NCBI GenBank assembly: GCA_010909165.1 | Contig: VJWM01000254.1 | Span: 124,001 to 188,000 of the forward strand | Reading direction: 5' to 3' | Source: Anthoceros angustus | Lineage: Eukaryota > Plantae > Anthocerotophyta | Length of the DNA: 64,000 bases | In this document: piece after piece, positions 25,345 to 52,549 of the stretch | Position numbering within the stretch: position 1 is the first letter of the stretch | Layout of the letters: each line of letters starts with the position of its first letter | Made by a program: the position numbers and the translations under genes | Notes under the pieces: model-generated | What the model was told of the DNA's origin: nothing | Database searches by the model: none | What the model saw: only the letters and a program-made list of their open reading frames with translations

Positions 25345-28300
25345 TCACTCCTCCCCGACCTGCATCGCTTTCTCCATGTGGAATAAATGCGCATCACCAT
25401 CATCCTCCCCACCACGAGGGAGTGCAGGTTGAAGATGGGGACGGAGGGCACTTAACTTCTCTTGATAGCTTTTTATCCGCCGCAGATGATGTTTCCTAGA
25501 AGTGAGATTGAACCCATAGTACACAATGACCGCCTTATGTACAAACAACTTCAACGTTGGGTGGCTTCCATGCTTTTGCACCTTTGTTGGTAGGATGAAA
25601 TTGTCTACCTCCTCGTCCCCGGTATTCTCCGACATACTTGCCCTCGTAGGCATCGGTGCCTTCGCCACTGCTGCACCAGTATGGGTCATCGGGCCAGTGC
25701 ACACTCAACACCTTTGCAACCCGTAATGCCCTGTTGTGTGTCCCTCACAAGGTGACAATAAACATACCTTTTTAATCTCCATGATGTCACCATTCATGCG
25801 CTCGACCTCTTGCTCCCGCCTCCACACTGTAAGCACCAAGTACATGTCCTGCTGAGGCACGCCTCGCAATAAGGCTTCGCCCAAGATAGCCTCCTCGAAC
25901 TCGCAGCGGTACAAGTGCTGCCGCATCTATACCACTTCCACGGACTTTTCAACACAAGGCCAATGTTATTGTCCACTATAGTTGCAATCTCCTCTTGATC
26001 CTTCCAAGTCATTCCACCACCTCCTCCTCCGCTGGTTAACATATGTGGAAAGTTTCAAACCCTTCCTTAAGTGCTCTACTCCTTCCCGCAAAGTGAGCTT
26101 CCATCACGCTTTCTTGTCCTTGGCCTCAGAGCTAGCAGGTTGTGGGTCCTATCTCAAAGATTTGGAATAAAAGACAAGAACTCCAGCCCATCTTCCTGCT
26201 TCCCATAACGGTGAGGTCGAGTACATCTTACAACGTAACTTTACCCCCGCCGCTTTTCCTCCCGTGATTTTGAATTGGTGTTGGAATGATAGATTGTTCA
26301 CCATAACAGCCTTTTAAACTTCCGAGCTGCCTGCTTTCAACGGCCGACGAAGAACGGAAGTCCGGAACCTCGGTCAGACCTTCACTGGTTTGGCGTGAAC
26401 GCCTTGGTCAATATATCCGCATAACGGAAGAGTTTTGGCCTCTTTGTGCTTCAAATGCTTGGAGAAACACGAGAACATTTGGTCAACTGGTCATGTGTGT
26501 GACCGACAAGAAGGAACCCCACCTTCACTTTCTCAAATGTCCCCATCTCCACGAGCATATTCGGATAAGCAAACAAAGAGCTTGATTCTTGTTCTCCGAC
26601 ATGTGTTGTCCAGCTTGCAAATATAGAACCTTGGGAAGTAAGCCAACATATGTGTATCACATCTTGTATAATGCATATGGTTAAATTAGCATCATCAAAT
26701 TTATGAGTGACACGCCTGCCGTGAACGTGTGATTGTGAATCATACACCCCACCACATGGACGGTAACACGGCTATCTTCCTTTAGCTCCTTAGGCCATCT
26801 AAGTATATGCGGTAAAGATGTTTTTTCTCGATCCATACCATCGATACATAACAACATGTACTTGTGAGGCTCGGTGTATCCTTTCGCTCGATGTTTTGTC
26901 AACTTCTTCCGCTCCTCCATAAGCTTTATGCGATGTTTGTTCAATGCCTCCGATATATATCCGCCATACAACCAAATGTCATGTCGTTGTCCATGAAATA
27001 TATACCATCATTCACACGACCCTCCCCACTAACGCCTCATTTCAAATGCAATAAGGGTCGACGCCATTATAAGTCCGGGGTCTAGGTTTTGTCCACCGAG
27101 GGGCAAGGGCATCGACCCAACTCGAGAGGTCAACCCCTAAACCGAACCTAGGGTTCCGGGTTATCCCAGGCATATTGAGGCCCTCAATGGTCCTCAACGC
27201 TAGGGCGCCGAACGCTACGAAATGTCAAGGCGAAGTGTCCGGGCCACGCTCATTCGCCTTCAACTCATGGCTGCAGGCCGCCAACCCCTTTCCCTGCTTC
27301 CTCCTCCCCTTTCCCATCCCCTTCCACCCTTCCACCAAGGGCGCCGCATGCCGCGCTCTCCCCTCCTCGGTCGACCAAGTATTCTCCGACATACTTGCCC
27401 TCATGTCGGTTGCGCCACCTGCACCAAGTATGGGTCATCCACACCACCTTTGCAACCCGTAATGCCCTGTGTGTCCCTCACAAGGTGACAATAAACATAC
27501 CTTTTTAATCTCCGATGTCACCATTCATTCTCGACCTCTTGCTCCGTCTCTCCACACTCTGGTAAGCACCCAAGTACATGTCCGTTGAGGCACGTCTCGC
27601 AATAAGGCTTCGTCCAAGATAGCCTCCTCGGAACTGCGGTGGTACAAGTGCCTGCTGCGGATCTATCATACCACTTCCACGGACTTTTCAACACAAGGCC
27701 AATGCTATTGTCCACTATAGTTGCAATCTCCTCTTGATCCTTCCAAGTCATTCCACCACTCCTCCTCTGCGTTAACATATGTGGAAAGTTTGCAAACCCT
27801 TCCTTAAGTGCTCTACTCCTTCCCGCAAAGTGAGCTTTCCATCCTTTCTTGTCCTTGGCAGTAGAGCTAGCAGGTTGTGGGTCCTATCTCTACATTTGGA
27901 ATAAAAGACAAGAACTCCAGCCCATCTTACATTTCCCATAACGGTGAGGTCAGTCTTGTTTACTCGGATAACGGTAACTTTACCCCTGCAGTTTTCCTCC
28001 GCGTGATTTTGAATTGGTGTTGGAATGATAGATTGTTGACTTAACACTTTAAACTTCCGAGCCCACTGCTTTCAACGGCCGACGAAAGAACGGAAGTCCG
28101 GAACCTCGGTCGGGACCTTCACTTACGGGTTTGGCGTGAGCCTTGGTCAATATATCCCATAAGGAAGAGTTTTGGCCTCTTTGTGCTTCAAATGCTTGGA
28201 GAAACAAGAGAACATTTGGTCAACTGGTCATGTGTGGCCAAGAAGGAACCCCACCTTCACTTTCTCAAATGTCCCCATCTCCACGAGCATATTCGGATAA

Positions 28301-31300
28301 GCAAGCGCTTGATTCTTGTTCTCCGACATGTGTTGTCCAGTTGCAAATATAGAACCTTGGGAAGTAAGCCAACATACGTATGTATCACATCTTATAATGC
28401 ATATGGTTAAATTAGCATCGTTCAAATTTGCGTAGTGCGAGATCTTGTGAGCGTGTGATTGTGAATCATACACCCCACCACATGGACGGTAACACGGCTA
28501 TCTTCCTTTAGCTCCTTAGGCCATCTAAGTATATGCGGTAAAGATGTTTTTTCTCGATCCATACCATCGATACATAACAACATGTACTTGTGAGGCTCGG
28601 TGTATCCTTTCGCTCGATGTTTTGTCAACTTCTTCCGCTCCTCCATAAGCTTTATGCGATGTTTGTTCAATGCCTCCGATATATATCCGCCATACAACCA
28701 AATGTCATGTCGTTGTCCATGAAATATATACCATCATTCACGACCGACCTCCCCACTAACGCCTCATTTCAAATGCAATAAGGGTCGACGCCATTATAAG
28801 TCCGGGGTCTAGGTTTTGTCCACCGAGGGGCAAGGGCATCGACCCTAACCGCCTCGAGAGGTCAACCCCTAAACCGAACCTAGGGTTCCGGGTTATCCCA
28901 GGCATATTGAGGCCCTCAATGGTCCTCAACGCTAGGGCGCCGAACGCTACGAAATGTCAAGGCGAAGTGTCCGGGCCACGCTCATTCGCCTTCAACTCAT
29001 GGCTGCAGGCCGCCAACCCCTTTCCCTGCTTCCTCCTCCCCTTTCCCATCCCCTTCCACCCTTCCACCAAGGGCGCCGCATGCCGCGCCTCATCTCCCCT
29101 CCCCGAGGGCGCCGCATGCCGCGCCCCGCCCACCAAGGGCGCCGGCGCCTCATCTCCTGCGGCCCCGCATGCCGCCTCCTCCCCGAGGGCGCATGCCCTC
29201 CTCATCTCCCCTCCCGGCGGCAGCATCGGCCCCGCCTCCTCCTCTCCACTGCGCATTCTAGAGAACATGCCCCGCTTCCTCGACCAAGGGCCGACCGATC
29301 GTACCTCGACCAAGGGTCAACATCCACCATCACAACATACCACCGTGATCGATGGCCCACCGTGACGCCCAACCTTGCCCCTTTATACCATATCGGAAAA
29401 CGGTGTGGCGATATACCTTGATCCGTCACGATCCAAAGGTTCGGATGTTGAACTTTAGACCGCAAAGAGAACATTTGGTCAACTGGTCATGTGTGTGACC
29501 GACAAGAAGGAACCCCACCTTCACTTTCTCAAATGTCCCCATCTCCACGAGCATATTCGTATAAGCAAACAAAGTAGCTTGATTCTTGTTCTCCGACATG
29601 TGTTGTCCAGCTTGCAAATATAGAACCTTGGGAAGTAAGCCAAAGATACGTATGTATCACATCTTGTATAATGCATATGGTTAAATTAGCATCGTTCAAA
29701 TTTATGAGTGACACGCCTGACTTGAACGTGTGATTGTGAATCATACACCCCACCACATGGACGGTAACACGGCTATCTTCCTTTAGCTCCTTAGGCCATC
29801 TAAGTATATGCGGTAAAGATGTTTTTTCTCGATCCATACCATCGATACATAACATGTACTTGTGAGGCTCGGTGTATCCTTTCGCTCGATGTTTTGTCAA
29901 CTTCTTCCGCCTCCTCCATAAGCTTTATGCGATGTTTGTTCAATGCCTCCCCGATATATATCCGCCATACAACCAAATGTCATGTCGTCCATGAAATATA
30001 TACCATCATTCACGACCGACCTCCCCACTAACGCCTCATTTCAAATGCAGAAAGGGTCGACGCCATTATAAGTCCGGGGTCTAGGCGATTGTCCACCGAG
30101 GGGCAAGGGCATCGACAACCTCGAGAGGTCAACCTAAACGCGAACCTAGGGTTCCGCCAGTGGTCTATTGAGGCCCTCAATGGTCCTCAACGCTAGGCGA
30201 AACCCGGCCACGAAATGTCAAGGCGAAGTGTCCACCGCCATTCGCCTTCAATATGGGCGGCATGCGCCCAACCCCTTTCCCTGCTTCCTCCTCCCCTTTC
30301 CCATCCCCTTCCACCTTTTCACAAGGCGCATGCCGGCGCCTCATCTCCTCCCCGAGGGCGCATGCCGCGCCCCGCCTTTCACAAGGGCGCCGCATGCCGC
30401 GCCTCATCTCCCTTACCTCCCGCATGCCCGCCCCGCCTCCCCGAGGGCGCCGCATGCCGACGCCTCCTCATCTCCTCCCCGAGGGCGCATGCCGCCTCAC
30501 TCTCCTCCAAACTCGATTCTAGAGAACATGCCCCGCCTCGACCAAGGGCCGACCGATCGTACCTCGACCAAGGGTCAACATCCACCATCACAACATACCA
30601 CCGTCGTCATCGATGGCCCACCTCCGTGACGCCCAACCTTGCCCCTTTATACCATATATCGGAAAACGGCGCTGAGCATACCTTGATCTCGCGATCCAAA
30701 GGTTCGGATGTTGAACTTTAGACCGCAGAGAACATGTTGAAAATCGATTGATTTGGGTATCTTCACGCTTGAAGTTCGCCTCCCATAGTCTCGTAAAGTA
30801 CGCATACGAAATATACCGCAGCTTTTGCTCCATGCCACATTTGTATTGTGTCCACACTTCTAGTTTGGTGAAAGTGTCGAAGATTGTAGACTTCAACATT
30901 AGGCCCGCCCCGCCCCTCCCAGGGCGCCGCATGCCGACGCCTCCTCATCTCCCCTCCCGGCCGGGCGCCGGCATGCCGGCGCCTCACTCTCCCCTCTCCT
31001 CCACCCGATGGCGCATTCTAGAGAACATGCCCGCCTTCGACCAAGGGCCGACCGATCGTACCTCGACCAAGGGTCAACATCCACCATCACAACATACCAC
31101 CGTCGGATCGATGGCCCACCGTGACGCCCAACCTTTGCCCCTTTATACCATATCGGAAAAAATGTGGGGAGTCTGATGATCCGTCTGATCCGGATGTTGA
31201 ACTTTAGACCGCAAAGAGAACATGTTGAAAATCGATTGATTTGGGTATCTTCACGAAGTTCTCGCTCCCATAGTCTCGTAAAGCACGCTGCACGAAATAT

Positions 31301-31950
31301 ACGCCTTTTGCTCCATGCCACATTTGTATTGTGTCCACACTTCTAGTTTGGTGAAAGTGTCGAAGATTGTAGACTTCAACATTAGGCGCCGCCGCCAATT
31401 GCGTAAATGTTGCATCCATCCATGCTATAGCGCCTAATGCATGAGATGATTTCACCCGGCTTGGCTTGCTACCATCCCATGGTGAATTCAACAAGATCAC
31501 CCTTCACCTCCTCATACCTTTCCGACCCTATGCAATACACCCTTCAAGGATTTCGTGCAACACTTGATTGGAACCGGTTTCTGTGAAAGTACATGCACTG
31601 TCTTTGCCTTCGATCCATGGTCGGGCCTTACAAGGGTCTCTGGAATGTCTCCGCCTGACCTTCCCAACATAAGAAACCTTTGCCTCTCTTCTTGAAACCC
31701 TCCTCGAAAGTCGTTGAATACATAGTTTGTTGCAACACGGTTTCCGGAAATCTTGCGTAACCGTGTCCGCCTCTTCTTCAAGGAGACACCAGCTACGCAA
31801 ACGAAACCTGTCGCTCACCGCAATGTCTCCGACATTGGCTTCGATGATAGGACACCGCAGCGAGGAGGGAACGGGAGGATGGGGAACGTTGCCATCGCCA
31901 GCAATATCGCCCCCGATGCACCAAACACTCCACACGGAGGGGCAAAGAGA
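25345..31950 (-). pseudogene. DUF7869-like putative DDE transposase, frameshifted and internally triplicated (core copies ~26380-27060, ~28100-28800, ~29466-30060)
   Basis: Fragments in order: N-terminal CCNKLC (~31.7 kb), FTRLW...NRFSTCSLC, YMLLCIDGMDREKTSLPH, NDANLTICII, YLQLDNTCR(E)NKN (~28315-28350), FEKVKVGFLLVGHTHD, then a C-terminal region with EGKYVGEY and VIVYYGFNLTSRKH ending at 25345. Confidence 0.7.
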
Positions 31951-32949
31951 CCTCGCATGGCACGCTCATTTCGACGGGCGGGCGACATCGCTCGCCTCTC
32001 GGGCTAAGTTCCATAGCCGCATACAAGTTCAAGTTCCGGCGTCGGTGGCACATAGGGGGGCACGAATGGTTATGAGTCCTTCGCCATCCCGAGCTCGCAT
32101 ACGATTTTCACGAGAACAAGGTGAAGCATCGTCATCCACAACGACGATTACCACTCATCGCCATCCGCTTGCCTCGGGAATTTCCAGCTTGTCTACATAA
32201 GCTTGTGTTCTCACACACAGTTGTCCACAAAGAGCATTCAAAACTCGGTCCCTCATCAAAGCAAAGTTCGCGCTTTGGCCAAATAGATCAATGCTCCTTT
32301 CACCGCATGTAGGTCTCTTTGTGAGGGCAAGACTGATGCCAACAAGTTCCCGCCATCCGCAGAGTCAAGCCGCATGACACCCACTATGAACAACGCCCAC
32401 GAGACAAGGGACTCGAACGTGAGGCGACGCTTTATGAAAATTACCGTGTCCTCATCGGTATGGGTGGAGTGGAGCATGGGAAGAGACGCGCCGGTGAACG
32501 CGATCCCAAAGACCGTGAACAAGGAGGAATACACAAGCCTCGGCACAATCATATTAGACATAGCGAACTATCGCGGATGCCTCGGAGTGGCATCTTCCAA
32601 AGACCGCGGAGAAGATTTATCAAGCGGATCCGACGCCGCTATTCACAAGCGTCATAAAGTTGCGGCTTTTGCCGTTAGGGATCGGAAGGCTTTAATGTAT
32701 GTAAGTGCAACACGTGGAAAACATGGGCACCGTGAAATAAAATCGTGGCAAAGATAGCTGCCACACCAAATAAGGGTAAGTGGAAAAACAAACACCACAA
32801 CGGTGGCGACATCACCGCTTTAACCCTTGCCCCGATTTTTAAGCGCTTCCTTCCGTAATGGAGCGCCCATCACGCTCACCGGCACCGAGTTGCGCCCACC
32901 GCAAACCAAGGAAGGCCTCGAATTGCGCCTCCAAGCCGCCAGGTGAGGG

Positions 32950-35900
32950 AGGCCGGCCGTGCGCCATTCGTGACCGCAGGAGGTGCGCCACGCCTCCTTT
33001 TGCTGCTTGAGGAGATTTGGTGTCTCACCGTGCATCCGTTGCTTGTGCGTGGCAATGGCAAGTGGGCGCAAAGAAGGAATTGGCGGTGATGGAGAAGAAA
33101 CCCGCCGCATGTGGAGAAACCAAGCCAAGAGACCAAAGGGAAGAAGGCGATCACACCCGCAAAGACCGCCATGGAGTGGATGCACACCTTCGAGCCGACC
33201 GGTCTTCCAATTCTAAGGCGCCACTTGAAGGCGAACTGGCACGCGTTGAGGGGCGACGGCCCGAACTCGGATCCGGATCGGCAAGGTGAGCACAACGAAG
33301 GGAGCAGGTGAGGGAAATCGTGGATGGCAAACTCACGTAAGATACCGCCGCAAATTCTAATCCTCACCTTTTACGCTTGAGGAGACTGCTCAATTGCGCA
33401 GACACTAACCGATTGATGAGACAATTGTCCGAGAAGGACGGCTTTTGACACAGAGTGAACTGAAAGACACAATGTGGTGTGGACACCAATGTTGAAATTA
33501 TGGATTTATGGCCACAACGGTGCTTTGCCGAATCGAGAGCTGTATGATTTGTGGTATGGGCAACTTTGATAGAAGCGGAAGGAGATCCGGATATTCAGGT
33601 CTTGGTGACTTCGAAGCCTTATGGGTTTGAAGCTTTGCCACGAGTCAAGATTACAGTGTTCGTGTTGAGCATAGCAGTTTGGTTAGCAAAAGTGTGAGCC
33701 ACGTGAATTGTCTCTCAAATTCGGAAGCTCTTCGACACGGGATTGTAAGTGTGTCTTTGGTCATTGATTTTGAAGTTTTGGAACATCTTTGCATCCACTT
33801 AACCACTTTTGGAACTTCTAACTCGTAATGCAAGGAATTTTTATCGATGCTTGTGTGAAGTGATAACAACTTCTATCATCAATCACCGTCGCGAGATGTT
33901 CTTTAGAAGGACCAGGGCTGGGCTGTCTGATTATGAATTGGAAGGAGATGAGGACGAGGCCGAGTATGGACCCTCGGATGAAGAGGATGGCCCTATACCG
34001 GAGCTGCTTGGCCAAACAGATGACGAACTGTCGGAGGAGGATGGTGATAACAACTTCTATCATCAATCACCGCGAGATGTCCTTTAGAAGGACCAGGTCT
34101 GTCGATTATGAATTGGAAGGAGATGAGGACGAGGCCGAGTATGGACCCTCGATGAAGAGGATGGCCCTATCGAGTTGCCAAACAGATGACGAATGTTGGA
34201 GGAGGATGGTGATAATGGGGTGAGGAGGATGATTGCGATTTCCATGCCGGGTGCCAACGGTGCCTTACAATCCGGTGAAGACATGGGTCGCAGCATGGAA
34301 TTGCCCGCGGGAGAACACGGGTTGGGCACCCCTCACAGTGGTTTATATCGGTATGAAGGCATGGGAGGAGAAGGGCGCCGATGCCGCCCTTCCTGACCCG
34401 CGCAGAAGGCGGCATCCCAAAGACTATGGGGGTGGGGCAGGCACCAGAGTCGTGGAACGGAAGAGGGCGCCGCATGCCGCGCCCGCTGGCCCCGGGAGGG
34501 GGCGCATGCCGCCCTTCCGTGCCTTTGATGGAGGCGGCGCCGCATGCCGGCGCCCGACCGGCCTTGGGATGAGAGGGAGGCGCCGCCGCCTCCCCGCCTT
34601 GGGATGAGAGGGAGGGCGCCATGCCGCGCCCTGTGCCATGGGAAGCAGAGGTGGCGCCGCATGCCGCGCCTCCCGTGCCATGGGAGAGGGAGGCGCCGCA
34701 TGCCGGCGCCTCCTCACGGGAGAGGCGCGCATGCCGCCCCGCCGTGAACCCAAGATGGTGGAGGCGATCGGAGTAGTGGAAGCGCAAGCGGAGTTCGACA
34801 TAGCTGGTTTGGGGGAGGTCAACAAATGTGGAGGCAAGAGAATTTGAGAAGGAAGAAAGGCAAGCGCAGCAGAGCGCCGATACGATATTCACTATGCATG
34901 TTGCATCGATGGGGAGAGGCCGGAGGCCATTGCGCGCCATTCGTGATCGCGGGGCCACGCCTAACCTGCTGCGGCTTGAGGAGATTTGGTGTCTCACCGT
35001 GTAATCCGCTTTGCAGGCTGTGCAATGGCAAGTGGGCGGCAAAGAAGAAGGAATTGGCGGAGTGGAGAAGAAACCCGCCGCATGTGGAGAAACCAAGCCA
35101 AGAGACCAAGGAAGAAGGCGATCACACCCGCAAAGACCGGCGGAGATGTGGATGCACACCAAAGTTCGAGCCGACCGGTCTTCCAATTCGCTTGAAGGCG
35201 AACAGGCACGATGTTGAGGGGCGCATGCCGCGCCCGAACTCGGATCCCGGGATCTCAAGGTGAGCACAACGAAGGGAGCAGGTGAGGGAAATGGATGGCA
35301 AACTCACGTAAGACAAAGCCGAAATTCTAATCCTTCACCTTTTACGCTTGAGGAGACTGCTCAATTGCGCAGACACACTAACCATTGATGAGACAATTGT
35401 CCGAGAAGGACCGGCTAGTGCGTAACTGAAGAAGACAATGTGGTGTGGACACCAATGTTGAAATTATGGATTTATGGCCACAATGGTGCTTTGCCGAATC
35501 GAGAGCTGGATTGTGGTATGGGCAACTTTGAAGCGGAAGGAGATCCGGATATTCGGTCTTGGTGACTTCAAAGCCTTATGGGTTTGAAGCTTTGCTGTCG
35601 GACTACGGTGTCTGTGTTAGTGCTTGGTTAGCAAAAGTGTGAGCCACGTGAATTGTCTCAAATTCGGAAGCTCTTCGGATTGTAAGTGTGTCTTTGGTCA
35701 TTGATTTTGAAGTTTTGGAACATCATTGCATCCACTTAACACTTTTGGAACTTCTAACGCGTAATGCAAGGAATTTTTATCGATGCTTATGTGAGGTGAT
35801 TACAAGTATCATCAATCACCGTCGGAGATGTCTTTAGAAGGACCGTGGTCCTGACTATGAATTGGAAGGAGATGAGGAGGCGAGTATGGACCCTCGGATG

Positions 35901-38750
35901 AAGAGGATGGCCCTATACCGGAGTTGCTTGGCCAAACAGATGATTTAAGGAGGAGGATGGTGATAATGGGGTGAGGAGGATGATTGCGATTTCTCCATGC
36001 GGTGCCAACGGTGCCTTACAATCCGTGAAGACATGGGTCGCACAGAATTGCGTGGGAGAACATGGAGTTGGGCACCCCACCGGGTTTATATCGGTATGAA
36101 GGCATGGGAGAGAGGAAGGCGCCGGCATGCGGCGCCTTCTTCGGACCTCCGCGCAGAAGGCGGCATCCCAAAGACTATGGGGGTGCGCAGCACCTGTGAG
36201 CCGTGGAACGGAAGAGGGCGCTGCATGCCGGCGCCCGCCGCCCCATGGAGGGAGGCGCGCATGCCGCGCCTTCCGTGCCTTTGATGGAGGCGCGCCGCAT
36301 GCCGCGCCCGACCGGCCTGGAGGAGGGCGCATGCCGCGCCTCGCCCTGTGGATGAGGAGGGCGCGCATGCCGGCGCCCTGCCATGGGGAAGAGAGGCGGG
36401 CGCCCATGCCGCGCCTCCCCGCCATGGGAGGAGAGGAAGGCGCCGCATGCCGCGCCTCTGGGAGGAGGGCGCGCATGCCGCCCGTGATCGATGGTGGAGG
36501 CGATCGGAGTAGTGGAAGCGCAAGCGGAGTTCGACAATGCAGCTTGGTATGGGGGAGGTCGCCAACAAATGTGGCCGAAAGAGATTTGAGAAGGAAGAAA
36601 GGCAAGCGCAGCAGAGCGCCGATACGATATTCACTATGCATGTTGCATCGATGGGGAGAGGCTGGAGGCCTCCATCCGTGATGAAGATTATTTGCGAATA
36701 TCGAGAGCGCACGAAGAAAGTGGTTCCAAATGCTTCCGAAATTAGAGAATTTAAGGCCTGCATCCTTTCTTTCTCCGATGCATGATTCGGATTGTGGATG
36801 AAGGCATGGACCAACTACAGCTCGAGTTATTTCAAAGGTAGAGTGGAGGCCATTGCGCGCCATTCGTGATCGCGGGGCCACGCCTAACCTGCTGCGGCTT
36901 GAGGAGATTTGGTGTCTCACCGTGTAATCCGCTTTGCAGGCTGTGCAATGGCAAGTGGGCGGCAAAGAAGAAGGAATTGGCGGAGTGGAGAAGAAACCCG
37001 CCGCATGTGGAGAAACCAAGCCAAGAGACCAAGGAAGAAGACACCCGCAAAGACCGGCGGAGATGTGGATGCACACCAAAGTTCGAGCCGACCGGTCTTC
37101 CAATTCGCTTGAAGGCGAACAGGCACGATGTTGAGGGGCGCATGCCGCGCCCGAACTCGGATCCCGGGATCTCAAGGTGAGCACAACGAAGGGAGCAGGT
37201 GAGGGAAATGGATGGCAAACTCACGTAAGACAAAGCCGAAATTCTAATCCTTCACCTTTTACGCTTGAGGAGACTGCTCAATTGCGCAGACACACTAACC
37301 ATTGATGAGACAATTGTCCGAGAAGGACCGGCTAGTGCGTAACCGATGAAGACAATGTGGTGTGGACACCAATGTTGAAATTATGGATTTATGGCCACAA
37401 TGGTGCTTTGCCGAATCGAGAGCTGGATTGTGGTATGGGCAACTTTGAAGCGGAAGGAGATCCGGATATTCGGTCTTGGTGACTTCAAAGCCTTATGGGT
37501 TTGAAGCTTTGCTGTCGGACTACGGTGTCTGTGTTAGTGCTTGGTTAGCAAAAGTGTGAGCCACGTGAATTGTCTCAAATTCGGAAGCTCTTCGGATTGT
37601 AAGTGTGTCTTTGGTCATTGATTTTGAAGTTTTGGAACATCATTGCATCCACTTAACACTTTTGGAACTTCTAACGCGTAATGCAAGGAATTTTTATCGA
37701 TGCTTATGTGAGGTGATTACAAGTATCATCAATCACCGTCGGAGATGTCTTTAGAAGGACCGTGGTCCTGACTATGAATTGGAAGGAGATGAGGAGGCGA
37801 GTATGGACCCTCGGATGAAGAGGATGGCCCTATACCGGAGTTGCTTGGCCAAACAGATGATTTAAGGAGGAGGATGGTGATAATGGGGTGAGGAGGATGA
37901 TTGCGATTTCTCCATGCGGTGCCAACGGTGCCTTACAATCCGTGAAGACATGGGTCGCACAGAATTGCGTGGGAGAACATGGAGTTGGGCACCCCACCGG
38001 GTTTATATCGGTATGAAGGCATGGGAGAGAGGAAGGCGCCGGCATGCGGCGCCTTCTTCGGACCTCCGCGCAGAAGGCGGCATCCCAAAGACTATGGGGG
38101 TGCGCAGCACCTGTGAGCCGTGGAACGGAAGAGGGCGCTGCATGCCGGCGCCCGCCGCCCCATGGAGGGAGGCGCGCATGCCGCGCCTTCCGTGCCTTTG
38201 ATGGAGGCGCGCCGCATGCCGCGCCCGACCGGCCTGGAGGAGGGCGCATGCCGCGCCTCGCCCTGTGGATGGGGAGGGCGCGCATGCCGGCGCCCTGCCA
38301 TGGGGAAGAGAGGCGGGCGCCCATGCCGCGCCTCCCCGCCATGGGAGGAGAGGAAGGCGCCGCATGCCGCGCCTCTGGGAGGAGGGCGCGCATGCCGCCC
38401 GTGATCGATGGTGGAGGCGATCGGAGTAGTGGAGTAAGCGGAGTTCGACAATGCAGCTTGGTATGGGGGAGGTCGCCAACAAATGTGGCCGAAAGAGATT
38501 TGAGAAGGAAGAAAGGCAAGCGCAGCAGAGCGCCGATACGATATTCACTATGCATGTTGCATCGATGGGGAGAGGCTGGAGGCCTCCATCCGTGATGAAG
38601 ATTATTTGCGAATATCGTAGAGTTCGCCAAGAAAGTGGTTAAAAGCTTCTCAAATTAGAGAATTTAAGGCCCGTGATCCTTTCTTACTCCGATGCATGAT
38701 TGGATTGTGGATGAGGCATGGACCAACCACCGCTCGAGTTATTTCGAAAG
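32950..38750. repeat. Tandem ~1.92 kb repeat x3 (~32950-34920 diverged; ~34921-36843 and ~36844-38750 near-identical)
   Basis: Near-identical ORFs recur 1917 bp apart (ORF ends 35267/37184 and starts 35913/37830). Each unit has an acidic DYELEGDE...EYGPSDEEDG segment and a GCATGC-palindrome array. Confidence 0.9.
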
Positions 38751-41220
38751 GTAGGGTTGAGGAAGGTGTCTACTGCATGATTGACCCATCGATGCGACAT
38801 TCAATCTATAGATCGGAATAAGTTTAGAGCAAAGAAGTATGTGATGGGAGTGCTCGGGGGCAATCACACCTATGCAGCGATGAAGCATCCGGACATATCT
38901 CCATCAAGGCCAGATTCCAATGGATGGAAGCCCATGTCTATTGTGGGCTCACTTTACAGGAGATGAGGGTTCTGGCCACAGACCACAACACCATGTCTGA
39001 CAAACGGAGGAAGATGACTTTCATTGAGCAAGTTCGGTATCTGCGAGATGAGTTGCGATAGCAAAGAGATGGAGTCAATATGACCATGAACTGGAAGTTC
39101 AACCTATAAGGTGCTAGGCTTGATAGATGATGATGAGGCCGAGAGGATGAGCGATAAGCAAAACAAGGTCGATAATCGCACACATATCCTTTGCATCGCC
39201 AAACTTGAGGGAGAGTGTGGGAAAATGTCGATAAGATCTTCACGAAGTGGAGGCCATGGAATTGCTGTAACAAGCCAAACATGTTGCCGCAGGACAAGCA
39301 AAAAGAGCAAGGGAAACTAAGACTGGATGAGGCGAAGTCGGTGGACCAAAGTTTTGAAGCCAAAGGACATGCAAGGAAGCCTTGGCGAAGTTTTCGTGGT
39401 ATTCCACCGGGTGAGACTGCCAAAAATGTTGATCGTCACCGAGAAGGTCGACAATATCCTTTGCATCGCCAAACTTGAGGGAGAGTGTGGGAAAATGTCG
39501 ATAAGATCTTCACAGTGGGAGGCCATGGAATTGCGAACAAGCCAAACATGTTGCCGCAGGACAAGCAAAAAGAGCAAGGGAAAGCGGAGGCTGCGGATGA
39601 GGCGAAGTCGGTGGACCAAAGTTTTGAAGCCAAAGGACATGCAAGGAAGCCTTGGCGAAGTTTTCGTGGTATTCCACCGGGTGAGGCGGCAAAAATGTTG
39701 ATCGTCACCGAGAAGGTCGTGACAGTCTCATAGACCTCAATGGTATGGCCAAGGAGATCACTCTTGGAAGAAACTACATGTGATACAAGTGGCTATGGCG
39801 AAGCATCTAGGCTGCAATTCATTCGAGATGGTGAGGAAGGAGTACCGGTGCACTCAACGGATGAAGTCATTGCGATTTCGACCGCTCAAGGGAAGGTGAG
39901 TTTCGCTGTTCTTACCAGTATAGAACTATTGGAGGGCGCCGGCATGACGGCGCCCTCCCTTTCCCTATTGTCCCCGCAATCTGACTTTCGGCAACCTCAC
40001 TTGTTTTGTGTTATTTTGCAGCAAGTTAAAGATGTTGAAGACCTGAAAAAGCTACCAGAAGATTTCCAGGCTTTTATATTAGAGGTCCACACATGGAAAG
40101 GGCTGGAGGATGAGCAGAGGGCACTTGCGGACATGGACATGGAGGAAGGGCTGCAATCTTTCATCGCCCAAAACAGAGGAGTTAGTGAAGTATCAAGTGG
40201 TGCGCAGAGATGTGGCGTAAATGAGAGGGTTTCTTTGAGTCAAGTATACAACTGGTGATGGATGTCCCTAGGGATTCAACAAGGGAAGTATGATGTCAAA
40301 CTTGAGCAAAGAAATGGCAAACATATTTCATTCCTTCCATGACATGACAATGTGCGACGAGATCGTAATGATAGTAATGCATGGTGTGGAAGAGCCGCAT
40401 ATTGTCGTGAGAGTATGAGGAAGTGGTGCGTGTGGAGGCATGGTCTCATTTGTTTGGGACAAAACTAATATGCACAATGACCAAGGAGGCTTTGACATCG
40501 TGGAGTACATCATGGGTGGGGTGACCGCACGAGCAAGAAGACAAAGGTGTCCATGTCAATACCTTGCGGGCTCTTTCAATAATGGGCGAGCGGTTATTGC
40601 ACACGACGTGGTGAAGAAGTTATTATACATGTCGCTGGACAAGCTGGTTGTTTCCGCGTATCAGAGGCCACTGGGTCTAATGATGAAGTTGATCAAGAAC
40701 TTCTCGAGAAGGAGATTGGATATTAGATGCATGTGCGGTGGAGTGGAACAACGACATTAGCGGCACTCCTTTGTGGCCGAAATTGCATTGTGGAGGTTGA
40801 CAAACGTGGCAGTTCATTCCGCAAAGGATTCATGGCTATGAAGTTTTACCGGACGCAGAGGAGGAGTTGACCCATGAGCCACACCGCCGAGGCCCCACCC
40901 ACCTGGGCAAAAGAATTGAGCTTGTCCGAGAAGGATGCATCCCAGTGCCCGTAGTCCCACTTGGGTTGAGCAGATGAAAGAGAAGACGGAGATCTTATAG
41001 ATGATCGCCAAGAAACTGCCTCGCATTGTGGCATCCCGACTATTTGGAGAAGAGCAAGGAGGATGCGGTCGATATCACGGAAATGCTATGGTCGAAAACG
41101 ACAATTTCGAGGATCCCGAGGATGCTCGACCAAGGACGGAAGTTGTGTTAGATAGCGTGTCGGGACAATGCCTCCCGAGCCACGCCTCAAGCCGAGAATC
41201 CCCTCGAGGGAAGTGAGTCT
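38640..41220 (+). pseudogene. ParB/Srx-like N-terminal domain plus beta-class N4C/N6A DNA methyltransferase-like gene (frameshifted, with an intron)
   Basis: VLGGNHTYAAMK (GGNH at 38856-38867) followed by VYCGLTLQEMRVLATDHN. Motif-IV-like LVMDVPR at 40261-40272. Motif X-I-II region YQRPLGLMMKLIKNFSxEGDWILDACAxSGTTTLAALLCGRNCI..EVD (~40655-40800, two frameshifts repaired) parallels N6_N4_Mtase QKP..L...LI..STNPGDIVLDPFAGSGTT..AA..LGR..IGIE. Confidence 0.7.
39185..39722 (+). repeat. 270-bp tandem duplication inside the ParB-MTase gene
   Basis: TCCTTTGCATCGCCAAACTTGAGGGAGAGTG occurs at 39187 and 39457. Confidence 0.85.
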
Positions 41221-41547
41221 AGTTTAGTTTTGAAAGTACCATAACCTGCATGGTTAGAACTAAGGCGCCGCATGCCGCGCCTGCTTAAGCCTCCTTCTTT
41301 AACTATGAGTGACATTGTTATTCGTTTTGTCAAGGATGACTTCTATTGACGGCTACAAAATATCTGTAGATCTCGTTTCACACCTATAAGACATTCGTCG
41401 TGCACCGTACGAGAGGTCCAGAATGCACCAACATACCCACATTCGTGTGAAAGCACCCACAAACGGGATGCGCAACCTCAAGCACTAAACTTGCAATGGA
41501 CCGGATGGGGAACCCGAATTTGGTCCCGGGTTTTCGAAAGCGGGTTC

Positions 41548-41579
41548 GTATATTCCGCCGGTTCAAATATTATGGTGTT
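41548..41579 (-). repeat. Right terminal inverted repeat (32 bp)
   Basis: GTATATTCCGCCGGTTCAAATATTATGGTGTT followed by CTAT. Confidence 0.85.
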
Positions 41580-44500
41580 CTATGAGCTACTCAAAACAAT
41601 CTAACGGGCTATACAAAATGCTCTTATTGATGGGTCACATTCAAAATGAAGTATCCTGGGTATGCAAATTAACCAATGCCCACAATAATGGCTTTAGAAC
41701 AGAGTGTGGAATGAAATGTATGAGGTTAGGGTTAAATATTATGAAACGATAAAGGTTAAATAATTAATGATATAAAGTTGAAGTAAATAATCATTCAGTT
41801 TGCTATAATCTGTCCGAGGGGATTTGGTTCATTTTTTTTTGGGTGTAATTCTTACTGATTGGAATTAAGAAAAAATAGCACATCTAGGAGAATCCTCCTA
41901 AAGGTATGAAAAACAAATGAGCTCAACTACACTAGACTAGTAAAAGTCAAGGTTGGTCGCGTTAACAGGTATCTTGACTTGTGTGCCATCCGAGAAATTT
42001 CCTAAGAAGGTGTGCCCTCCTCTTAAGTTGTGTGACCATCCACTGAACGAGATTGACCAGCAAATCTGCGTCCACCTGGACCTAAACTTGGTGAAGGGTG
42101 GCTGGCGTTAACAGCTAACCAATGTCCAATACTCTGTTAGCTTCATCATTGAGTGTCAACGGCAGGGATTAAGCGTTGATGGAGACCTCTTGAACAGATC
42201 ATTCACGTTCAGCACTATTTCCGGAACGATCTTGCAAGGACAGACTAAAGGTTGGGTGATTCGCAACAGCGTTCTGGCTTTCTCAACAAAGAAGGCCGCT
42301 CCCCAACTAGGGCTTTCGGCCTTGGCCAACTCCCAATCTCATTCCACGAGCTCCGCGACCTTGGGGCTGGCCAGCTCGAATTTAGGGAACATCAGAAGCC
42401 GAATTTCCTTTAAGGAATTGGTATCCTTATGTACATTGATGTCGATCAGTGTATCTAACTCGACATAGAACCAGTGAAGTTCCTCTGGATTCCTGCACTT
42501 AACCATAAAGGTGGGAGCAAAGGCTAATAGTGCCCTGACCAACTCCTCGGTCTATCTGGCTCCTTCCAGGTCAGTAGAACAACTAGCACACATCCAATTG
42601 TCTTCAGCGAATTATGTTTCCACTGGATCTGACAGGCTGGTCCTTACGATCTCCACCGCTTCATAGGCGGCATCGAGTTCAATTTTGGTTGTGCATGGTT
42701 CATAGACGGTTCAGTTTGAGAGAATTGAATGGAGTCAAGTCACAGTGATGCTCTGTGTGGTGTTGGCAGCTGCATTTCTAGAGAGAGTGGAGGTTTTCAG
42801 ATATAAGAGCTGAAGTAGGCTGATTCATCTCATCTCTAGGTTGTAAAAGGAGTGCGGTGTTGAACAAATTTTGCCGCAATTTGGTTATGGAGTTGGTTTT
42901 GCAAATTGTCTTCTTGGAATATCTCAACTAAATAAAGATGGAGAGGTATTGGGGAGGTGATACTCCGCATCTTTGTGTTCTAGTTATACTATTTCTGTTT
43001 GCCAGCATTTGTAATAGTAGTGAATTATCACCTGGTGTCACCTGATCACTCGCTATGGCTGTAGGCAAACCCTTGTCATGTCCGTGCCGTAGCCTTGGCA
43101 GGTTAGGATGCAAGAGCTTGAACACACTCCGCTCCATCTCATGTTGGACAACTTTGGACTGGTCGGAATGCCTCATCAACCTACTGCTCAAACAACCAAG
43201 ATGCCTCGTCTTCTGCCAATGAGTCCCCTCTCAAGCCCCTTCCTGCTGATCCTCAATTGTCCACCTCTGCTGGTAGACTCAATAGGATGTGGTCTAGCCA
43301 TTACAAGAATCACAGGTGTTTTATAACACATTTTACAATGTAATTTACATTGTCCTCACGTTGCAAAAATGGACATTTACACGTTTGTAGAATAACAGCT
43401 TAATGAGCGCTATTACTGCCAGTGTTGTGACATCTGTGGACATCCTCCTCATCTCCTTCCCCAGCGCCCAAGAAAACTAGGGCTCCCCTTTCTCACTCCC
43501 CAGCAGCTGCCGAGTACTCCATTCGACGTGTAACTAGTTGTCTGTCATTGCCCCAATGCAGGAAAATCAAGTTTGAAGCGCATGCGCAGGCCGAAGGAAG
43601 CAGCACCCTGTCTGCGGAGATGCTTCAACAAATCCCCAAGGACCTTGCACCTGTAGCCCCTAGCCTAGACCTCCTTCCTCACTCACTTGCTCGTAAAACA
43701 GGTCATCTTCAACTCTCTCAATAATGCAATGGACAAGTGGCATCAAACCATCGCGGAAGTCAAAGACAACTTTGCTGGTATTCTATCTAGAAATTGCTTT
43801 TGCACTGCGCACCGCGTAAGGGCATCTTTGTAAATTCCTTTGCCCATTATAACGCGACAAGATCACCAAGAAAAACAACCTTCAGACAGGGCAGCCCATA
43901 TCGTTGCACACGTGAATTGAGCCTTTCGATTGCAATCGCGAAGGAGAAGCGAGCAAGGGCTGAAGCGCTTCCTTGTTTTTTGTTTGCTATTGCTATCAAA
44001 TTCTACCCAAATTCACACTCCTCTCCAACACCCGGGGATGCATGAACGAGCATACTTAATGTGCAAAGTCCTGGGGCCATATTTCGTACCACAAAAATTC
44101 ATGAGCACCGTGAGGCATAGAAGAAGAAGAAGAAGAATTATATTTAAGTCCTCTAAGGACGGATTTCCGTCATGGGACTTGGTACTTAACAACTTCTACC
44201 ATGATGTGCCTAAGCTACTTGCACCAAGGGCATCCCACTTACTTTATACACCCCATCTAAGTACCGATCTAAGCTCAGGATGCTTAATCATCAAGGGCAT
44301 CCACTCCCTTTACGCACCCCAATCTAAGCTCAGGATGCTTAATCACGACGTTCTTATAAATGTGTGTCCATTTGGCCTAAGCCATTTGGACACACATATG
44401 GTGGAGCATGTTCGGCCCTAAAACGGGAAGTCGAAGCTAAGAAGCTAACAGCATCGTCGTCCCTAAAAACAGTTTCCCGAGGGATTCAAATCCCGAGAGG

Positions 44501-45606
44501 GAAAGGGGGAAGGAAAGCGGCAGGCAGGCTAGGCTAGTCTGGCATGCGCAATCGAGCGGCAGGGAGCAGTGACGTGCACCGGGTCGTGAGTCGGGCATGT
44601 ACGAGACGGCGGCCACGTGGGCGAGCCACGCCCCGCCGTCGCTACCACGTGCCGGCTGCCGGACACGGCATGCACATTCCCCGTTCCAACAGTTTTCAGT
44701 CCAAAAGGCAACTTCCCCGACGAACCTACGGTACTCGAGTCCTGGACCCCAGAAAAAAAAAAATCAAGGCCTACGTGAGGTCTCTGTGTGTATGCGTGTA
44801 CAGTACAACCTACCAAGTGTACCTAGGCAGTATCAAGGGCGGCCCACCTCGCATCAGATTCTGGCTGCGCCCTGTCCGTCCCCACCACCATTCCCTTTTG
44901 CCGGCGTCTAATCCCCACCCTAATAATCCCAATCTCCGTCTATAATCACCGCCCGCGGCCCGGAGCCCCGTCCCCGGTCCCCGGTCCCCCTTGCCCTGTA
45001 GGCTGCTGACTCCCAGTTGCAGCAACTTGGCCACCGATTCTCACGTTGGCACGCCACATGGGCCCGCGCCCCGCTGCCGCGTAGGGCACTGAACCCACGT
45101 CCCCGCCCCCGGGCCCCGCCCACGGACCAGCCCCGCCGGGATCCCCGGACCAAGCCCCTGGTCCGTCCATCGCCGGCTCCGCCTCTCTTTCCTTTCTCGT
45201 CTCTCTTCCTGTCCCTGGCGTCGGGACGCGCCACTGTGTTGCCCTGCAGGAGCAGGCCTCTGCCGGAAGCGGCAAGGCGGAGTCGGGGCCGAGCCGAGTT
45301 GCTTCCCGTGTGGTGCACGCCTGGCTGCTGCTGTTGCTGTTGCTGTTGCGTGCCCGCGGCCTCTTTAACCCCGCCTCCTGCCTGGGCTTTCTCCTTCTCC
45401 TCCCGCATTCTTCCTCGGCCGCAGACGGAGCGGCCTGAGCCTTCTGGAGCGTTCAATCTGTGTCTGGGAGATGGCCGGGGGACGACTGTTGCCTGCGGCT
45501 CAGGGGAGGCGAGGTCGGGTGTAGTTCTGAGCGGATCTGAGCTGGGGAGCGGGATCCGGCGGCTGCGGGAAGGGAGGGCGGAGGGAGAGGGTTTCCCGGC
45601 TGTGGC

Positions 45607-48600
45607 ATGGTGACTGCCCTGGCCGGGGTCATGGCTCTGTACTCCAGCTCGCCGCCTGCCGGAATGTGGTCTTCGCAATGTGCGTTGGGGGGTAATGCTG
45701 CTGCAGGGATGGAGATGGAGGTGGTGTCGCGGACTACGGCGCTTAATTCGGCGTCCAAGCCTGGGGTGTTGGTAGGAGGGTTGTCGTCGCTGTTTGCCAG
45801 CTCCGGGGCGCGGCATTCGGTGTGTGCCGGGGGGGAGGTGTCGGAGGCGCCGTGTCTGTCCATGGGGATGGTGCGGAGCGGGTCGCAGACGGATCTGGCG
45901 TCGTTGAGCGGGGGCTCGGAGAGCCGGAGTATTCCCAAGCTGAAGGAACGGAGTCCTGTGTCCGTGCTGTACGGACCTGGGGGGCCGGTTTGTGTGTCGG
46001 CGTCGGCTTCTGCTTCGCACAGCGGGTCGCATGGTTCACAGATCTTGTCGTTGGCGTGCGAGTGGGAGAGGGGGAGCGGGAGTGCCAGTACCAGCGGGGC
46101 GGATCACGTCTGGGAGCGGAGACGGTGGCCGTTGGAGTGTCGGAGGGGAGTCAGGAATGACGGGTTCGATGGGAGAGGGGACAGGTTGGCAGCTGCGTTC
46201 CGGTCCAGAGTTTTGGATCTGCGCAGGCCCGAGGTGGACTTGGGGTCCAGTGACTCGGAGGCGTCTGATTTTGGGGATGAGTTGGAGCTCGAGGGTTTGC
46301 AGACCGATGAGTTGGCGTGTGCTGATGGTAAGCGTGGGCCGGCTTGGGATGTGGCTGATTCACGGGAGAGGCTGCTGGGTCTGGCGGAGAGGGCTGCTGG
46401 TATTGCCTCCTCTTTGACTCAGGACGTTTTGGTTGCCGAGAAGGTGGTCAAGCCCAAATCCCCTGATGAGATGCTCAGGGATGCCCAGAGGCAGCACCGC
46501 GTTTTCAATCACGCTTTCGTTGTGAAAGCTTTTCGGACAGCACAAGATGCCCATAATGGTCAGGTACGCGTGGCAGGAGTACTGTTTTAATTTCGCTCTT
46601 TGATCGTGTGGCTTTTGTTTTGATGTTCAAGTGTGATTGTGTGGCTTTTGTTTTGATGCTCAAGTGTGGTTTTTGCTCGGTGTGATGCAGTTCCGCCGGA
46701 ATGGAGATCTGTACCTGGCACATTGTGTGGAGACTGCTCAAATCCTAGCAGCCTCCGGGGCAGACAGCACGGTTGTTGCGGCTGGCCTTCTTCACGACAC
46801 TCTGGATGACGCATACCTCGATGAATCACAGCTTCGGGTTGACTTTGGAGATGAAGTGGCTGGCCTTGTTTGCGGGGTATGTTTACCTTTACTTTCTGTT
46901 TCATTGGTCATCGGAGTCAATGAAGCTGTTCCACAAGCGCATGTGTTTGTCATCGGTTGTTCGCTTATAGCTCCGTTCTGCACTACAGGTCTCCAAGTTG
47001 AGCAAATTTAGCCAGTTAGCCCGTGACAACAGAACTGTGTGCAACTCGGTGGAGGCTGATCGGCTGCGTACCATGTTTCTGTCTATGGTGGATGCCCGTG
47101 TGGTTCTCATTAAACTGGCAGATCGCCTGCATAATATGAGAACCCTTGGTGCCCTGTCCCCCGTGAAGCAGATCCGCATTGCTGATGAAACTCTTCACAT
47201 ATTTGCCCCACTGGCAAGTCGACTGGGTATCTGGAGCTGGAAAGCTGAAATGGAGGATCACTGCTTCAGATACTTGAGGCGTGAAGAATATGACGAGTTA
47301 TCCCTAAGAGTGGCTGAGGGAAGGGGTGAAGGCGAGTTGCTCTCCTCTATCAAAGAACTGGATCAGGCTCTACGAGAGCAAGGTGTGGAGTTCACAGATC
47401 TTTCTGGCCGGCCCAAGAATTTGTACAGTATTTACTCGAAAATGATCAGGTAAGGAATCAGACAAAAGCTTTGCTGGTACCTGGATGACTGCTTTTTTCT
47501 TGTGTCCCTGCAACTGTGCCTCACAAAAAATCCGTGTGTTGCAGAAAGGGCCGGCATATTGATGAAATATTTGACTATCATGGGCTACGTTTAATCGTTG
47601 AAGATGAGGCAAGCTGTTATACTGCTTTGGAGGTCGTACACAGGCTGTGGTCACACGTTCCAGAGAAATTGAAGGACTACATAAAATCACCCAAAGAAAA
47701 TGGGTAAGCTTTCTGACCCGTGTTTCTTCATGCCTGATGTTGGAAACTTCACCTAATTCGATTGCCACTTTATTACTGCAGGTATCAGTCTCTGCATACT
47801 GTTGTGCGTGGTAGTGAAGGACATTTTTTGGAGGTTCAAATCAGGACTGTTAAGATGCATCATCAGGCTGAATTTGGTTTAGCTGCCCACTGGCGATACA
47901 AGGAGGGAAACCATAAATATTCGTCCTTCATACTTCAGAAAGTGGAATGGGCTCGCTGGGTTTTGACATGGCAAAGTGAGATCATGGATACAAAAGTCAG
48001 ACTGTCACCTGCACAATCAGACCTCAGGCCACCCTGCCCTTTTCCCCTCCACAAAGATGACTGCCGCCATTCCACTGTTTGCTACCAGCCTCCACAACAT
48101 GATGACGATCCTCTCTTTGTTATATTGCTGGAGAATGACAAGGTACTAAACTTTGTTCTTTATCTCATTTCTGGGGTTCACATTGCTGTGTCTTGCCGCT
48201 TAGGGCTGGGGCTTCCTGTAAGATTTTTGTTTCCGATAGGGGCAGTTTGCTAGTTGTTCGGAACACATGAAAATCTGTAACACACTTCGTTATGCAGATG
48301 GTTGTCCAAGAATTGCTTCCAGGGTGTACAGCAGCAGACTTGATGGTTGAAAGACGAGAGAAGTACCCAGATTGGGACTCCACATGTGCAACCGGAAGCT
48401 ATAGCAAGGAGAAGAAGGCAAAAGTAAATTGCAAGTTTGTAGAGGATGCTCATCAGAAGCTGAGGATGGGTGATCTTGTAGAATTTGCTTGCGAACCGGA
48501 AGTCAGTTCGGACAGGGATAGTATGCTTTTGGAGCATACCGCACACCGAGGATCTCCAGGGGACAGGTGTGGTCAAATTGCTGTTGAGTTTCAGAGGGAA

Positions 48601-52520: not shown

Positions 52521-52549
52521 AGTTCAAAATTACAAGAGAAGACAGAGTG

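Follow-up and report, generated by a model that had tools for sequence, protein, structure and literature searches.

A pseudogenised methylase-like gene of Anthoceros angustus, probably a passenger of a large DNA transposon and paired with a DUF7869 gene

We analysed a window of 64,000 nucleotides (nt) from Anthoceros angustus (VJWM01000254.1; position 1 is the first letter of the stretch), in which a first-pass annotation had described a bacterial-type methyltransferase gene fused to a ParB-like domain. At this locus lies a 17-kb element bounded by terminal inverted repeats (TIRs) that carries two broken genes on opposite strands: a passenger gene, with an N-terminal domain and a domain resembling beta-class amino-methyltransferases, and a gene of the DUF7869 family. 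The passenger gene does not work as a gene of the host, nor has it newly arrived from bacteria; we consider it, with good probability, a pseudogenised passenger of a large cut-and-paste DNA transposon, in which it is paired with the DUF7869 gene. The element, its two genes and their other copies in the window are as follows.

24534-41579, no strand: transposon copy 1 (element 1), 17,046 bp, non-autonomous and internally decayed, containing both genes of the pair
24534-24565, plus strand: left TIR, AACACCATAATATTTGAACCGGCGGAATATAC, preceded by CTAT at 24530-24533
41548-41579, minus strand: right TIR, identical to the left one at 32 of 32 positions and followed by CTAT at 41580-41583
26200-30893, minus strand: DUF7869 remnants of element 1, with stops and frameshifts, located by tblastn with the proteins of the related loci L002, L059 and L060
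32961-38762, plus strand: 1.9-kb unit repeated three times in tandem, with 98% identity between the second and third copies
38781-41213, plus strand: passenger (accessory) gene copy 1, N-terminal domain and methylase-like domain, a pseudogene truncated at its 5' end
50700-52331, minus strand: passenger gene copy 2, about 70% identical to copy 1 at the nt level, frameshifted, with MDVHRGFNKG and with the N-terminal domain deleted
52313-53601, plus strand: DUF7869 remnant beside gene copy 2 and head-to-head with it
62650-62829, minus strand: third passenger-gene fragment, reading YTLLFCDLPRGL, with motif IV D-L-P-R-G

The 32-bp terminal repeat matches the window at just two places, where 0 are expected by chance, and the CTAT outside both ends is a putative 4-bp target-site duplication (TSD). 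Head-to-head pairs of a DUF7869 gene and a methylase gene occur twice in the window and once in L002, a related 9-kb locus from an unrelated public assembly, and each time the partners lie on opposite strands (passenger on plus and transposase on minus for copy 1 and L002, passenger on minus and transposase on plus for copy 2). It is because of the perfect TIR, the CTAT on both sides, the repeated DUF7869 pairing and the third fragment that we regard the locus as a transposon. The same observations make it very unlikely that the gene is a host DNA-modification pseudogene of bacterial origin, kin to DN4MT1 or N4CMT and once of use in the germ line, that came to lie near transposon debris by chance: three decayed copies stand inside 64 kb, the pairing with DUF7869 is conserved both times in the window and again in L002, and the gene sits within TIR and TSD boundaries. 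In favour of a host gene, the methylase domain is of prokaryotic type, and the plant retains a dynein heavy chain, which makes flagellated sperm probable.

In the window, both genes of all copies are broken and nothing works. Read as one protein, gene copy 1 needs at least 13 frameshift repairs and contains at least 3 stops; frameshift-aware alignment to relatives places 6 frameshifts and 2 stops at 38790-39403, 3 frameshifts at 39647-40147 and 4 at 40566-40915, and three-frame translation of 38500-41400 adds a further stop (40416) and shows that the frame changes within motif IV. Because other genes of the window are intact, we take these breaks to be decay and not assembly noise. The recognisable parts of copy 1 are listed here, with those peptides marked that the first-pass annotation had quoted.

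38790-39058, plus strand: C-terminal half of the "GGNH ... ATDHN" domain, aligning to the L002 open reading frame (ORF) and to the relative P0006
38850-38867, plus strand: VLGGNH (quoted)
38972-38989, plus strand: LATDHN (quoted)
39184-39719, plus strand: tandem duplication of 270 bp x 2 in the gene linker, 94% identity
40258-40286, plus strand: motif IV remnant MDVPRD/GFNKG (D-V-P-R-G), split by a frameshift
40449-40807, plus strand: methylase core remnant, with FVWDKTN, motif X YQRPLGLMMKLI..FS, motif I EGDWILDACA.SGTTT and motif II CI.VEVD
40449-40469, plus strand: FVWDKTN (the "W-x-K" strand)
40659-40694, plus strand: YQRPLGLMMKLI, motif X (quoted)
40708-40737, plus strand: EGDWILDACA, motif I (quoted)
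40742-40783, plus strand: SGTTTLAALLCGRN (quoted), motif I as a whole spanning 40708-40783
40790-40807, plus strand: VEVDKR, motif II (quoted)

The quoted peptides (GGNH, LATDHN, YQRP.., EGDWILDACA.. and the others) are thus all present on the plus strand after frameshift repair, where they are distributed across all three frames. The motif-IV-like segment that had been described upstream of them exists too, at 40258-40286, although it reads D-V-P-R-G and not the canonical (D/N/S)-P-P-(Y/F/W). Copy 1 keeps the C-terminal half alone of the GGNH domain, because the 1.9-kb tandem repeat ends at 38762, and as a consequence of the 270-bp duplication VWENVDKIF and PWRSFRGI each occur twice.

Relatives of the passenger protein are few. 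An exhaustive phmmer search of 1.84 billion representative proteins with a 113-amino-acid (aa) window piece gave one true relative, P0002 (E 1e-5); P0001, from the same search, is a low-complexity repeat protein and was rejected. Word-indexed searches added P0003, P0004 and P0005, as well as P0006 for the N-terminal domain. The 113-aa piece had chance matches only in the PDB search and no match in phage tblastn, and a 174-aa middle piece had no match in the word-indexed search, which was limited by length range. P0002 to P0006 all derive from a single Logan assembly, SRR33208241, and since all relatives found come from there, the family is very rare in public protein space.

The best of the related loci, L002, carries a 517-aa ORF that holds GGNH and ATDHN in one frame (...KYTCYVLGGNHSWQAR...WMEATVLAGLIEDEMRGVATDHNSIAEARKNF...), followed downstream on the same strand by a linker, the exon with motif IV and the core of the methylase. 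In the window, the pieces with GGNH and ATDHN are 38-53% identical to L002 and the relatives, and what is in pieces in the window is one continuous ORF in L002. In both L001 and L002 the homologous codon that follows AFK(N/G)I has a GT, and AG acceptors that would keep the frame are present, which points to a probable GT-AG intron of 0.3-0.6 kb. From these loci we would reconstruct a passenger protein of about 800-1000 aa, composed of the N-terminal GGNH...ATDHN domain, a linker and a beta-class methylase-like domain.

Codon comparisons of the relatives gave nonsynonymous differences per site (pN) of 0.28-0.35 versus synonymous differences per site (pS) of 0.64-0.82 in the methylase domain. 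For the N-terminal domain, compared between L002 and L005 over 165 codons, the ratio of nonsynonymous to synonymous rates (dN/dS) was 0.07 at a pS of 0.68, with synonymous sites saturated. By this measure the passenger protein shows the mark of strong purifying selection outside the window, and this selection on the relatives indicates that it matters to living elements elsewhere.

The window pieces of copy 1 have themselves no real Pfam or NCBIfam match, whereas their relatives, to which phmmer and tblastn tie them, match the N6_N4_Mtase profile PF01555 (Pfam cut-off, 26.7 bits): P0002 with 56.4 bits (5e-15), P0004 with 50.1 bits (4e-13) and P0005 with 39.7 bits (7e-10). A profile search as a check on the assignment therefore fails with the window alone and succeeds with the intact relatives. 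The family also matches phrog_67 (2e-18) and phrog_498 (2e-14, spanning P0004 residues 69-312), and 515-735 phage records together with 211 plasmids match it at about 35-55% identity across motifs X-I-II. Matches in the PDB comprise 2zie, DpnA, M.MboIIA, CcrM, M.RsrI and rotifer N4CMT. The motif order IV...X-I-II, which is the beta permutation, is seen in window copy 1 and in P0004 when the latter is aligned with six stand-alone phage and plasmid enzymes; LLVLDLPRGL of P0004 falls exactly onto their LILSDLPYGT, IICDPPYGT and VIADIPYNI, and its SPYQKPVRL...DGCSGSGST (motifs X and I) onto HPTQKPV...D.C.GSGTT. Window copy 1 has YQRP and DACA.SGTT for motifs X and I, broken up by frameshifts. The beta-class assignment made at first sight was confirmed in this way, and we consider it a solid prediction from sequence that the C-terminal part descends from a beta-class N6/N4 amino-methyltransferase domain that came from prokaryotes or phages and survives here as a remnant.

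Among the prokaryotic relatives, the best-scoring ones (37-46 bits) are orphan enzymes of phages and plasmids with D-[LI]-P-Y in motif IV, from Campylobacter, Lactobacillus (Lrm1), Leptospira and a Bacillus cereus plasmid. These share the motif order and the D-L-P-x-G context of motif IV; unlike the passenger protein, they are stand-alone proteins of 250-280 aa with Tyr in motif IV, and they have no N-terminal domain, introns or transposon setting. That phage and plasmid methylases are the sole recognisable relatives outside the family could speak for a recent horizontal transfer or for bacterial or phage contamination of the assembly. We regard either as extremely unlikely, since the prokaryotic identity amounts to merely about 35-55% over some 60-80 residues, the N-terminal domain as query found no family member in viral or metagenome contigs, plant genes and a copia element surround the gene, which carries numerous frameshifts, and a GT-AG intron probably interrupts the relatives at a conserved position. 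A DNA-modification module acquired horizontally by the host is not supported: the gene belongs, as passenger, to a eukaryotic TIR transposon present in several copies, and its relatives probably contain an intron.

In beta-class amino-methyltransferases motif IV has the form (D/N/S)-x-P-(Y/F/W/H), and its aromatic residue stacks on the flipped base. Here motif IV reads DLPRG in P0004, L001, L002 and the third window fragment, DVPRG in window copy 1 and DVHRG in window copy 2, so that Arg replaces the aromatic residue in six of six eukaryotic copies. D-x-P-Y/F/W is found in 25 of the 26 prokaryotic relatives scanned, the search finding no such motif in L046. The motifs that bind S-adenosylmethionine (SAM), namely X, I and II, are intact in the relatives. 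The domain is accordingly a constrained variant with an altered catalytic loop, which may or may not be catalytically competent; that D-L-P-R-G is itself conserved speaks for a function under constraint and altered, and against decay. Neither the leading Asp nor the relatives of DLPYG type support an assignment as N4-cytosine methylase.

The first-pass annotation had gone further and related the gene to N4-methylcytosine (4mC) in sperm. This link found no support: motif IV begins with Asp and lacks the aromatic residue, whereas that of Marchantia DN4MT1 is TSPPY; N4CMT is no closer than other enzymes; and no copy in the window is alive. A further point for the host-gene explanation is that the PDB matches include the rotifer N4C enzyme. 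Its chains 8s9m and 8s9n (2.6e-5 to 2.9e-5), however, do not surpass CcrM or MboIIA and fall behind 2zie and DpnA, and N4CMT (2.6e-5) ranks below several other beta-class enzymes (6.7e-9). Marchantia DN4MT1a/b and rotifer N4CMT resemble the passenger protein in having a beta-class domain of PF01555 type in a eukaryote; they differ in being intact, expressed host genes of the S-P-P-Y type, while the window family is of the D-L-P-R-G type, lies in a transposon and is dead. We had also considered the methylase of DIRS-type retrotransposons, and dropped it: no reverse transcriptase/RNase H or tyrosine recombinase was found nearby, and that methylase belongs to a different group.

The low dN/dS over 165 codons shows the GGNH/ATDHN region to be a real, conserved domain. 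Its kinship is another matter, and the label "ParB-like" given to it earlier could not be upheld. The 517-aa ORF of L002 has no Pfam match at E values up to 1, and the N-terminal domain has no PHROG match at E values up to 10, a chance match to titin only in the PDB profile search, no match in phage tblastn and none as a query in metagenome and viral contigs. An AlphaFold2 model had a mean predicted local distance difference test score (pLDDT) of 47 and was unusable, its Foldseek matches being meaningless. For a direct comparison, a ParB_N profile was made from ParB-methylase fusions, namely that of Wolbachia phage WO and 18 bacterial relatives; the ParB_N + PF01555 architecture of the WO protein (L016, 15675-16886) was confirmed. 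Against the eukaryotic GGNH domain, hhalign returned a probability of about 1% with a very shallow query profile (effective number of sequences, 1.25), and a local score of 17.9 versus 12.3 +/- 2.8 for column shuffles, 3 of 100 of which reached that score. A comparison by eye shows a likeness to ParB boxes II and III, both in how far GGNH and ATDHN stand apart and in the predicted succession of strands and helices; we offer this as a lead only.

Fusions of ParB_N with N6_N4_Mtase, such as that of phage WO, have the two-domain order that the first-pass annotation envisaged. Unlike the window family, their N-terminal profile fails to match the GGNH domain, and their methylase domain scores at most 29.5 bits, compared with the 37-46 bits of the stand-alone D-[LI]-P-Y enzymes. 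A search for ParB-fused methylases among the best phage and plasmid matches led instead to stand-alone enzymes or to a methylase-endonuclease fusion (Streptomyces phage Chucky).

On the opposite strand, L002 encodes a 618-aa protein of the DUF7869 family, whose Pfam profile, PF25273, is matched at E 1e-49 to 1e-50. With this protein as query, tblastn found on the minus strand of element 1, at 26200-29915, three partial tandem copies of the catalytic-core region; the C-terminal third of the transposase is missing from the element. In the remnant at 52313-53601 an internal deletion has removed the first approximately 126 residues of the homologous region together with the intergenic DNA. DUF7869 relatives occur on eleven metagenome contigs, some of them with ORFs that are long and intact, such as the 973-aa ORF of L059. 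These JGI and ENA contigs (L058-L068) are AT-rich (GC 0.34-0.45), their DUF7869 relatives are 37-50% identical, and no methylase partner was seen in their short flanks.

Across eight DUF7869 sequences IDGMDQKKT, LDNT..NK and GFLLVGHTHDQIDQMFS (in its other form, GHTHDQIDQMFS) are invariant, and these motifs may be read as a D-D-D/E triad. In an AlphaFold2 model of poor quality (pLDDT 48; predicted template modelling score, 0.55) the elements follow the RNase H-like order b1-b2-b3-a-b4-a-b5-a; one acidic motif lies on b1 and the other two follow b4 and b5, respectively. The top of the Foldseek list consists of retroviral integrases, herpesvirus terminase nucleases, UvrC-C and RNase HI, none of them significant. 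We hold with moderate confidence that the DUF7869 protein is probably a DDE-type transposase. A further module, PFW[LI].KV...VHWW...YGF, is conserved in the C-terminal part of the family (52963-53601 on the plus strand; L002 residues about 348-569). It matches no Pfam family, is missing from element 1 and may serve the transposase for binding chromatin or DNA. Element 1 is non-autonomous, because its transposase is truncated and broken, and since both genes are broken, copy 1 would be movable only by transposase supplied in trans.

The space between the two divergent genes of element 1 is filled by tandem repeats of 1.3-1.9 kb. Every 1.9-kb unit holds minisatellites of 35-41 bp built on the near-palindrome GGCGC(C)GCATGCCG(G)CGCC, whose 14-mer core, with at most 1 mismatch, has 20 matches, all on the plus strand and all within 29076-41281, compared with 0.01 expected. 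Such GC-rich palindrome arrays are confined to the elements in this window. Single palindrome copies occur near both ends of element 1 and flank the gene pair of copy 2 on both sides, and two perfect versions stand out.

53912-53933, no strand: perfect 22-bp palindrome GGGCGCCGGCATGCCGGCGCCC, beside copy 2, with a related site at 50610-50631
30964-30983: perfect 20-bp version in element 1

We see in the near-palindromes of the minisatellites candidate arrays of binding sites. The internal region of the element is one that has been amplified repeatedly; tandem repeats of 1.27-1.73 kb at 26400-31400 each restart the catalytic-core region of the transposase, and a 483-bp duplication lies at 30822-31387. 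The left junction later came to lie in a 1.16-kb tandem duplication (22288-24610, blocks 97-100% identical); the duplicated stretch covers flanking host DNA and the CTAT, and it also contains a second copy of the terminal repeat (23381-23411) that lacks 1 nt. For the second element, around copy 2, ends were sought, and what was found there was the shared palindrome only and no TIR.

The surroundings of the elements are those of a plant genome. Intact-looking host genes include the C-terminal domain of a dynein heavy chain (34-801, plus strand), which is consistent with a plant lineage having flagellated sperm, a 506-aa amino-acid permease (1246-2769, minus strand) and an F-box/Kelch protein of plant-specific beta-propeller families (3874-5061, plus strand). 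Between the elements lies a GC-rich block (44000-46600, GC 0.605) with long, overlapping ORFs at 44920-46032 on the minus strand and 45607-46590 on the plus strand that have no Pfam matches. A copia-type gag ORF (56095-57075, plus strand; Retrotran_gag_2, 3e-31; DUF4219) marks a long terminal repeat (LTR) retrotransposon to the right of the second element, and just upstream of the third fragment there is a (GC)n microsatellite of about 75 units (63037-63186), a potential Z-DNA tract.

The overall arrangement matches a recently recognised class of algal transposon passengers. In the Ectocarpus element Sola1-1_Ec32 (21.5 kb), a 1104-aa protein with a ParB-like and a DNA-methylase domain is encoded on the strand opposite the transposase, and its authors proposed that it binds and modifies its own transposon (PMC12477816); similar proteins have been noted in transposons of green and red algae (Iyer et al. 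2011; Petroll et al. 2025; PMC12477816). ParB-linked methylases were described by Iyer et al. in chlorophytes, chytrids and haptophytes. Like Sola1-1_Ec32, the window element is a large TIR transposon with an accessory gene opposite the transposase and with a putative DNA-binding N-terminal domain followed by a methylase of N6/N4 type, and its target duplication has the 4-bp length reported for Sola1. Unlike it, the host is a land plant, the aromatic residue of motif IV has given way to Arg, and ParB homology is not demonstrable. The likeness is drawn from the published description.

A second comparison is with the Plavaka (KDZ) elements of the red alga Bostrychia, which have ParB-like and methylase accessory genes and inverted-repeat tandem arrays beside the ParB-like gene (bioRxiv 10.1101/2025.02.11.637652). 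Their passengers PAG2 and PAG3 likewise carry a methylase-like or a ParB-like domain, and the arrays next to the ParB-like gene find a parallel in the GC-rich palindrome arrays of the window. In Plavaka, by contrast, two separate genes encode a methylase-SET fusion and a fusion of the ParB-like domain with a 2-oxoglutarate oxygenase, and the transposase belongs to a different superfamily. New in the present case are the occurrence in a land plant, the pairing with DUF7869, the Arg of motif IV, the explicit ends and the candidate binding sites.

Could the methylase-like gene be a fragment captured in the manner of a Pack-MULE, an inactive relic without function for the element? Such an origin would fit the decay of every window copy, the fact that no copy retains the aromatic residue of motif IV, and the frequency of captured genes in giant transposons (PMC12477816). 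We nevertheless judge such a capture to be improbable, given that purifying selection acts across divergent lineages (dN/dS 0.07-0.27, with synonymous sites saturated), that order and orientation relative to the transposase are kept across deeply diverged copies, and that the altered D-L-P-R-G is itself conserved.

Several observations weigh against a transposon passenger that binds and modifies DNA, and they should be set beside the evidence for it. The duplicated CTAT does not fit AWWT, the typical sequence of the 4-bp Sola1 target duplication, and the position of the left junction inside the 1.16-kb tandem duplication complicates its reading as a target duplication. No palindromes with a GCATGC core are present in the related loci L001-L005, and for this reason the idea of binding sites draws on the window alone. 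The fold evidence for DUF7869 is weak (pLDDT 48; Foldseek E at least 0.055), and the sequence and model tests did not demonstrate that the N-terminal domain is ParB-like or binds DNA. The change from Tyr to Arg may leave the methylase-like domain without any methyl transfer. No intact full-length passenger gene was recovered from the window and the related loci. As for the earlier claim that both domains belong to one gene, the GGNH/ATDHN domain and the methylase are collinear on the same strand in L002, while that locus itself requires about 3 (at least 3) frame changes. These are 1-nt changes at 4800-4840, 5620-5741 and 5835-5892, one of them in an A/G-rich run.

For active elements, we propose that the N-terminal domain of the passenger protein would bind the palindrome arrays of its own element, whereupon the methylase-like domain would mark the DNA of the element, with N6-methyladenine (6mA) or 4mC, or would clamp DNA with SAM. 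Such marking or clamping could shield the element from silencing or aid the assembly of its ends. In its fullest form, namely an active Sola-like DUF7869 family of land plants whose passenger recognises its own palindromes through a highly diverged ParB-type domain and, by a methylase domain with a remodelled DLPRG loop, puts an unusual mark on the element or clamps it non-catalytically with SAM, this is a speculative reading that we think possible and rather doubtful.

If it is true, a self-directed epigenetic or partition-like device of transposons, hitherto described only from algal sequences, would exist in a land plant. The window itself would extend the class of ParB-like/methylase passengers to a land plant. 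The topic is a current one, as transposons with DNA-modifying or DNA-binding passengers of their own include the algal Sola1 and Plavaka elements and retrotransposons with Dam or DNMT domains. The locus offers three handles: the ends of the element, the candidate binding palindrome GGCGCCGGCATGCCGGCGCC and the family-wide change from Tyr to Arg in the catalytic loop, which raises the question whether the domain still methylates. For genome annotation, methylase matches of this kind in plants should be masked as transposon genes, and they should be taken neither for horizontally acquired methyltransferases of the host nor for a source of 4mC in sperm.

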